Source: Octopus bimaculoides (Eukaryota). Taken from it: 64,000 nt of DNA. Where the stretch lies: contig NC_068999.1 of NCBI RefSeq assembly GCF_001194135.2, positions 43,352,212-43,416,211 on the forward strand, read 5' to 3'. The translations under genes and the position numbers were made by a program. Below the pieces are notes generated by a model, which saw nothing but the letters and a program-made list of their open reading frames with translations, had not been told where the DNA came from and searched no databases. Position 1 is the first letter of the stretch; each line of letters opens with the position of its first letter. Positions 47,927-48,215 of the stretch are shown here, in pieces.

Positions 47927-47939
47927 GTAGGGTGGACAC

Positions 47940-48081
47940 TGCTTGCCGCTAGTGCTGCAAAAAATTCTTTCATTGCTTTTCCGTCCTGTTGCCTGCTCGT
48001 CCATCCCTCCTCCAACTGACTGTCCCCACATCCCACCCAACCAACAATACAACTTTCTGTCCAAATGTCCATTTGTACATC

Positions 48082-48127
<46 letters not shown>

Positions 48128-48215
48128 GCTGCTGCTCCTCCCCCTCTCTCCTTGTCGCACCTTGTTCACGCTGTGGATGTTTTGATCTTTTATTGTTATT
48201 ATTACCTCTGCCTGC
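47940..48215 (+). promoter_or_regulatory. YGCY motif cluster (putative MBNL-binding intronic element) just downstream of the exon donor
   Basis: Seven YGCY at 47940, 47944, 47947, 47953, 47974, 47990 and 47994, plus five at 48127, 48130, 48133, 48169 and 48209, in pyrimidine-rich context. Confidence 0.55.

Follow-up and report, generated by a model that had tools for sequence, protein, structure and literature searches.

A question raised by this locus is how the RNA of a muscleblind gene is processed at the end of the exon encoding the second zinc finger pair, where a dense group of YGCY motifs, the motif read by the gene's own protein, begins a few nucleotides beyond the donor. Muscleblind proteins act as master regulators of RNA processing in a tissue-specific manner, and myotonic dystrophy centres on them. 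An initial annotation of the window (by which we mean the whole 64-kb stretch of DNA that was analysed) had proposed that these motifs act as an intronic enhancer controlling inclusion of the exon. Our own reading, to which we give about an even chance of being correct, is that the sequence from 47927 to ~48240 is an alternative 3′ extension of the exon for zinc fingers 3 and 4 (ZnF3/4), with the YGCY cluster as a putative muscleblind platform; this extension probably reaches on to ~49706. A regulated choice between splicing and read-through at the donor is well supported, and control of this choice by muscleblind through the cluster is, by analogy with related systems, a plausible lineage-specific hypothesis.

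The exon on which the question turns is the following.

47684 to 47926, + strand: muscleblind exon with zinc fingers 3 and 4 (tblastn, Pfam and PDB matches)

That it encodes the second muscleblind finger pair had already been claimed in the initial annotation, and homology searches bear this out. Human MBNL1 matches the exon with 57% identity (tblastn, E=2e-29), the Pfam family zf-CCCH_10 matches it in two stretches (E=1.5e-26), and the PDB entries for MBNL1 ZnF3/4, 3D2Q and 3D2S, match its translation (E=4e-27). The exon is 243 nt long with phase 0/0, so that skipping it would keep the reading frame, and it holds both fingers, with the tandem CCCH spacings CX7CX6CX3H and CX7CX4CX3H. This placement of the second pair on a single exon matches that of Drosophila mbl, which resembles the present gene also in having many alternative 3′ ends (PMC3315501).

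At codon TGT (47702-47704), finger 3 reads CREFQRCTC and thus has an additional cysteine within the first CX7C spacer, where all retrieved homologues and the human proteins have glycine (QRGTC or QRGNC). Organisms A and B, which are sister species, have the window's reading at this codon in both their RNA and their DNA contigs, so the cysteine is not an assembly error.

No further muscleblind exon was found in the 64-kb window, and neither neighbouring exon was recovered there even with 12-mers; the upstream intron must therefore exceed 47 kb and the downstream intron 16 kb. The neighbours are seen in spliced reads and contigs. The upstream exon ends in AAA GTT ACG AGG GCT GAC AGA TTA GAG (...GACAGATTAGAG), which encodes KVTRADRLE (KLMRTDRLE in human), and the downstream exon, joined to position 47926, starts with GGTGGTCTTACC... 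(GGTGGTCTTACCGGTGCACCTTATGCCAAAC). The transcript may also encode fingers 1 and 2, whose exons lie outside the window; the upstream exon is spliced on, and the homologue P0044 contains all four fingers.

Two features define the splice sites of the exon.

47620 to 47653, + strand: run of 34 T, then a C/T tract, forming an unusually long polypyrimidine tract before the acceptor (sequence)
47927 to 47932, + strand: donor GTAGGG (match of spliced reads and contigs to the genome breaks off at 47926/47927)

The acceptor is tttcag/G at 47683/47684, and its use is confirmed by contigs and reads that join the upstream exon to 47684. At the other end the donor context is CTG/GTAGGG, with the GT at 47927-47928. 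The donor consensus is GTRAGT, from which GTAGGG deviates (a comparison of letters, not a strength score); the same six nucleotides are nevertheless retained in eight of ten other lineages (L001, L007, L008, L010, L013, L015, L018 and L020). This retention suggests constraint beyond splice-site strength, which perhaps comes from a G-run element, or from a need for a weak donor that can be skipped.

RNA from organisms A and B contains two forms that differ at this donor. In the read-through form, the upstream intron has been removed and the transcript continues for at least 300 nt past the donor (X1, X4 and X5). The runs are as follows.

X1 (organism A, study P1): one 451-nt contig, depth 8.6, covering the upstream exon and the whole exon and continuing past both the donor and position 48082; no donor-spliced contig
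X4 (organism A, study P2): read-through as in X1, depth 12.5, contig end at 48002; no donor-spliced contig
X5 (organism B, study P3): read-through, 585-nt contig to 48232, depth 13; no donor-spliced contig
X9 (organism A, study P1, the same study as X1): fully spliced contig only, depth 10.7
X2 (organism A, study P2): both forms, 7.7 versus 3.5
X22 (organism A, raw RNA reads): three spliced, two read-through
X3, X6, X7 and X11 (organism A or B): upstream intron also present, unspliced on both sides

Read-through transcripts are abundant in some samples, and the choice between the spliced and the read-through form differs sharply between samples; the choice may be tissue-specific. Retention, which the initial annotation had expected to yield a truncated four-finger protein, is visible as read-through in X1, X4, X5, X2 and X22, and transcripts that leave the donor unused and would encode such a protein exist (X1, X4 and X5). 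The part of that expectation that probably does not hold is the extent, since what is retained is probably not the whole intron of more than 16 kb.

The read-through transcripts enter a segment with these features.

47927 to 48019, + strand: read-through open frame, 30 codons followed by the stop codon TGA at 48017-48019 (translation)
47927 to 48232, + strand: transcribed and constrained read-through segment, start of the alternative 3′ extension (RNA contigs X1, X4 and X5; divergence between organisms A and B)
48083 to 48127, + strand: (CT)n microsatellite within the read-through segment (sequence)

Translation confirms the earlier observation that the exon frame stays open as far as this stop. 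Between organisms A and B, the 243-nt exon differs by two synonymous changes. The read-through segment has two substitutions in 261 nt (0.8%, within the first ~300 nt after the donor), as against 36 in 513 (~7%) in three orthologous stretches deeper in the intron, so that the segment is about nine times less diverged (Fisher P=3e-5). Farther along, RNA and DNA runs of the close relatives B, C and D contain 0.8-0.9 of the words sampled from 48128-48240. Organism B lacks one nucleotide at 47959, which puts the tail into another frame that stays open for more than 100 codons. Since this deletion breaks the frame, the constraint acts on the RNA rather than on a peptide. Coding constraint on the 30-residue tail was accordingly rejected, as even the sister species does not share it, and the longer frame in organism B also makes a defined truncated protein less certain. 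The (CT)n tract is a candidate binding site, judged from its sequence, for a polypyrimidine-tract-binding protein. It also breaks short-read assemblies, and contigs of X1, X3 and X16 stop in or near it.

The YGCY motifs lie within and around this segment.

47940 to 47997, + strand: dense YGCY cluster of seven motifs (TGCT four times, TGCC twice, CGCT once; motif count)
48127 to 48136, + strand: CTG run (CTGCTGCTGCT) with three overlapping TGCT (motif count; starts 48127, 48130 and 48133)
46402 to 46448, + strand: weaker YGCY cluster in the upstream intron, 1.2 kb ahead of the exon, with five motifs in 58 nt (motif count)
49332 to 49385, + strand: weaker YGCY cluster, five in 58 nt, inside the presumed 3′ extension (motif count)

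Our recount agrees exactly with the number of motifs first reported. Seven YGCY start within 58 nt (47940, 47944, 47947, 47953, 47974, 47990 and 47994), the first at +14, i.e. 13 nt past the donor, so that the cluster spans +14 to +71; five more, including the CUG run, start at 48127, 48130, 48133, 48169 and 48209, giving 12 in 47927-48215. All 12 are retained in organism B. With a window background of 7.8 YGCY per kb, ~0.6 would be expected in the first 75 nt, and seven were observed (Poisson 3e-6, before multiple testing). Only two clusters of at least seven motifs in 58 nt occur on the + strand of the 64-kb window and none on the - strand. The other one (24699-24792, nine motifs) consists largely of CTG/GCT triplet repeats deep in the upstream intron, and 47940-47997 is the densest non-microsatellite YGCY cluster of the window. 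Moreover, the 500-nt bin from 47751 has the window maximum of 14 YGCY, and three of the six + strand clusters with at least five motifs are situated within 1.5 kb of the exon. A hairpin-type muscleblind site or a sequestered donor was unsupported, as the RNA fold of 47890-48030 contains nothing unusual (z=+0.33).

How far the cluster extends beyond close relatives was assessed with 10 distant loci of 75-82% exon identity. The dense cluster is absent in all 10 lineages: their first 100 nt contain zero to four YGCY, and no 58-nt stretch within the first 300 nt exceeds five. Pooled over eight of the ten, 15 YGCY were observed versus 9.3 expected, a marginal excess (P=0.05). Conservation of the motifs, on which the initial annotation had staked its proposal, therefore holds among close species, in which the segment is constrained and 12 of 12 motifs are kept, and fails in the distant lineages, where lack of the cluster is the outcome that had been named as counting against the proposal. 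Three further distant metagenome loci were left out of the intron comparison: their match continues past the exon end with no GT donor, and they look spliced.

The read-through isoform itself, on the other hand, is found outside the close species. Two full-length four-finger ORFs, P0042 (L021) and P0044 (L014), come from separate RNA assemblies of one distant lineage. Both end in ...QALVGFPSSSSSLGSESFKN, as results when the homologous donor is read through, and beyond that donor they follow the genomic locus L001 colinearly for 176 and 465 nt. The L001 locus has no YGCY in the 300 nt after the donor, so this lineage makes the read-through isoform without a dense cluster, which is thus not needed for the isoform. 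Together with the absence of the cluster in all 10 lineages, this indicates that the isoform is old and widespread, and the dense cluster is not. By comparison of these sequences, the cluster would be a feature of the window's lineage and not an ancestral part of the switch.

A few observations on the distant loci are of separate interest. One of the two assembled mRNAs (P0042/P0044, L021/L014) carries a 10-residue insertion, RGHTLENLFC, in finger 2 between DSIK and GKCQRK, which may be an alternative micro-exon or a retained piece and would disrupt the finger. After the donor, the first ~60 nt align well within each of the pairs L010/L018 and L001/L015 (for example, TGGTCTACTAAATCACTGCTTA is common to L010 and L018), and the donor-proximal segment therefore seems constrained in other lineages as well, with a different sequence. 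A TGCTT at +13 to +17, shared by the window, L003, L008 and L010, might have been an ancestral core motif; since L001, L015, L011 and L020 lack it and L018 has AGCTT, it is no more than a weak lead.

These comparisons bear on the alternative that survives best, namely that the read-through isoform and the constrained segment are real, and that the YGCY motifs are an incidental by-product of T/C/G-rich regulatory or 3′ UTR sequence in which muscleblind has no role. Other factors would then act at the donor, such as polypyrimidine-tract binders on the (CT)n tract or G-run binders at GTAGGG. The post-donor segment is 72% pyrimidine, and although dinucleotide-preserving local shuffles give P=0.003 for 47927-48000, the values are P=0.16 for the 58 nt chosen by hand and P=0.09 for the 289 nt. 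Much of the YGCY signal therefore reflects the local T/C/G-rich dinucleotide make-up, and the 10 lineages without a dense cluster, including the one that makes the isoform, fit an incidental origin too. Against it, seven of the eight GC dinucleotides in 47927-48000 have a Y on both sides, compared with 30% window-wide, and the top non-microsatellite cluster in 64 kb sits beside a processing choice in the gene of the very protein that reads YGCY, with weaker clusters on either side of the exon (at 46402 and 49332). We regard an incidental cluster as possible, though on the whole doubtful.

A second alternative is that the read-through RNA is nascent or slowly spliced pre-mRNA, made before the polymerase has reached the end of the intron of more than 16 kb, and represents neither an isoform nor a template for protein. 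Unspliced RNA is indeed common at this locus, given that X3, X6, X7 and X11 carry the upstream intron, and in X2 the contigs deeper in the intron have about the same depth as the read-through branch. Moreover, no poly(A)-tailed reads were seen in the RNA runs. This explanation nevertheless fits poorly with runs X1, X4 and X5, which lack a donor-spliced contig, with X9, which is from X1's study and lacks read-through, and with the two full-length assembled mRNAs of another lineage that end in read-through. Nascent intron RNA would also give no reason for the segment being so much less diverged than the deeper intron. The 3′ end of the RNA provides a further argument.

49667 to 49706, + strand: two AATAAA (49667-49672 and 49676-49681) in an A-rich tract, and the end of an X1 contig (sequence, X1 RNA)

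An X1 RNA contig at 49516-49706 (depth 4.8) stops 25 nt past the second AATAAA, and X1 RNA is absent at 49798-49941 and 50230-50265, both of which the DNA control X36 covered. RNA is thus missing past ~49.7 kb where DNA is present. We consider ~49.7 kb a candidate site for polyadenylation of the read-through RNA, or alternatively a place of internal priming on the A-rich tract. Read-through is probably an exon extension that ends ~1.8 kb downstream, rather than retention of the whole intron, and in view of these findings the nascent-RNA explanation seems to us quite improbable. An earlier end, before 48308, had been suggested by zero RNA at 48308-48379, and was ruled out because that segment is also absent from the probable DNA run X16 and from most DNA runs.

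Two side observations concern coverage around the segment. The stretch 48298-48400, between microsatellites, is present in only two of many same-species DNA runs (share 1.00, and 0.00 in the others), and is a polymorphic insertion/deletion or an assembly-specific segment. In organism B RNA, contigs over ~44750-48264 (a 2785-nt contig in X6, a 3507-nt contig of depth 34 in X7, and X11) span 2-2.9 kb of the upstream intron, the exon and the read-through segment; they could reflect transcription that starts internally, local retention of a block, or plentiful RNA that has yet to be spliced.

The weakest alternative is the model first proposed, in which the cluster is an intronic enhancer that decides between inclusion and skipping of the ZnF3/4 exon and thereby between four- and two-finger proteins, and although skipping would keep the frame, the Drosophila second-pair exon is included in only some transcripts (PMC3315501), and every junction contig begins or stops ~24-28 nt inside a neighbouring exon, as a branch of the assembly graph at those junctions would give, we judge it very improbable, because the alternative actually observed at the donor is read-through and not exon skipping, no skipped junction was seen in a search confined to the window, beyond which both neighbouring exons lie, and unspliced RNA explains the assembly branches equally well.

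Returning to the reading of an alternative 3′ extension with a muscleblind platform, we propose the following mechanism. The upstream intron would be removed first, after which the donor at 47926/47927 is either used or ignored. If used, the exon would be joined to one at a distance of more than 16 kb, and a full-length protein would result. If ignored, the RNA would run on into the segment and meet a stop soon after finger 4, so that in the window's species the product would be ZnF1-4 with an unconserved tail of 30 residues, lacking the normal C-terminal part. From motifs in other animals, that lost part is expected to hold KR-type nuclear localisation motifs, and the short protein would accordingly be more cytoplasmic.

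The cluster at +14 to +71 would serve as a putative platform for muscleblind's own protein. MBNL binding in a downstream intron promotes inclusion of the preceding exon (PMC5389549). By this downstream-binding rule, binding would promote use of the donor, and read-through would prevail when the protein is scarce; this direction is uncertain, and promotion of donor use is weakly favoured, by analogy, over its opposite. In the read-through mRNA, the same YGCY motifs would also be part of the coding tail and 3′ UTR, and muscleblind bound there could influence the stability or localisation of the message.

The element can thus be described as putatively autoregulatory: a YGCY cluster in the gene's own pre-mRNA, 13 nt from a donor with two processing outcomes. 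Several known systems are comparable. Five consecutive YGCY mediate autoregulation of MBNL1 exon 1 (PMC5389549), and another report states that distant muscleblind homologues work via similar motifs and that MBNL proteins regulate alternative polyadenylation (PMC5041496). The tight YGCY run in its own RNA makes MBNL1 exon 1 a close parallel, with five motifs there and seven here; however, those motifs are exonic, they cause skipping of the ZnF1-2 exon, and their role is proven by minigene mutation (PMC5389549), whereas that of the present ones is putative.

MBNL1 exon 5 and C. elegans mbl-1 exon 7 (PMC10773944; exon 5 also in PMC5389549) are another close parallel. There, too, a muscleblind gene is under feedback from its own product, as we propose here by analogy. 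The region concerned is just after the zinc-finger exons, and YGCY-type binding is involved, for which the sites here are putative. The outcome is a protein with or without a KR-type nuclear localisation part, which for the present gene again would follow by analogy. The differences are that in those genes the protein represses a small cassette exon, whereas here the donor is used or the RNA reads through into an exon extension, and that here the motifs lie at +14 to +71 of the intron 5′ end in a cluster that is not conserved beyond close species. Almost all bilaterian phyla have kept the autoregulated exon that carries the first KR motif, and the adjacent exon bears a second one (PMC10773944). 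A more far-reaching possibility, which we think unlikely, is that the ancient nuclear/cytoplasmic muscleblind feedback, which works by skipping the small NLS exon, has been rewired or supplemented, so that the gene's own protein, acting on a lineage-specific cluster, would decide between splicing, with the NLS, and read-through to an intronic 3′ end, with four fingers and without the C-terminal part. Were binding to promote splicing, this feedback would be positive, which would fit the near all-or-none isoform patterns between samples.

With regard to the form of the transcript, the locus resembles composite terminal exons and intronic polyadenylation. In these, use of a 5′ splice site is in competition with further transcription and the formation of a 3′ end within the intron, and the product is a C-terminally truncated protein with an intron-encoded tail. 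As in a composite terminal exon, the transcripts look mature, with upstream introns removed and the donor unused (X1, X4 and X5; L014 and L021). The difference is that the poly(A) site is here only suggested, by the AATAAA hexamers at 49667-49681 and the contig end at 49706.

A further parallel is circMbl (Ashwal-Fluss et al., 2014), in which muscleblind sites reportedly lie in the introns flanking the regulated exon, as the putative YGCY sites do here. It reportedly arises, however, from the exon of the first finger pair and needs back-splicing, whereas the present exon carries the second pair, and no back-splice joint of this type was found on 47656-48082 in 15 runs (12 of which are assembled contigs, which seldom keep such joints). 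Libraries selected for poly(A), if the present ones are of that kind, would likewise reveal such joints poorly.

To our knowledge, self-regulation of muscleblind in vertebrates, flies and worms operates via cassette exons only. Muscleblind autoregulation and truncation by intronic 3′ ends are each known, and their combination at the ZnF3/4 donor would be new; a literature search found no paper on muscleblind in cephalopods. If the proposal is true, this gene would have taken a different route to the same control, i.e. splicing versus 3′ end formation with its own motif beside an unused donor, and it would offer a simple natural system for studying the effect of binding just downstream of a 5′ splice site. 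Independently of any feedback, gene models of this animal group should include the short isoform.

Several repeats are found further along the downstream intron. Two copies of one repeat, at 48440-48600 and 48700-48860, each follow an (ATT)n or (ACT)n microsatellite and have very high RNA and DNA depth drawn from elsewhere in the genome; the second copy contains a tRNA-like GGGTTCAAGTC box. An assembly gap of 10 N (49268-49277) lies within a duplicated (AT)n...tttactctcagacagttttttgtgtaatg block. Finally, a SINE-like element at 49979-50204 is highly repeated, with contig depths in the hundreds of thousands, and has a second copy near 50280-50400. Since an orthologous DNA contig of organism B skips the element at 49979-50204, this insertion differs between the sister species.
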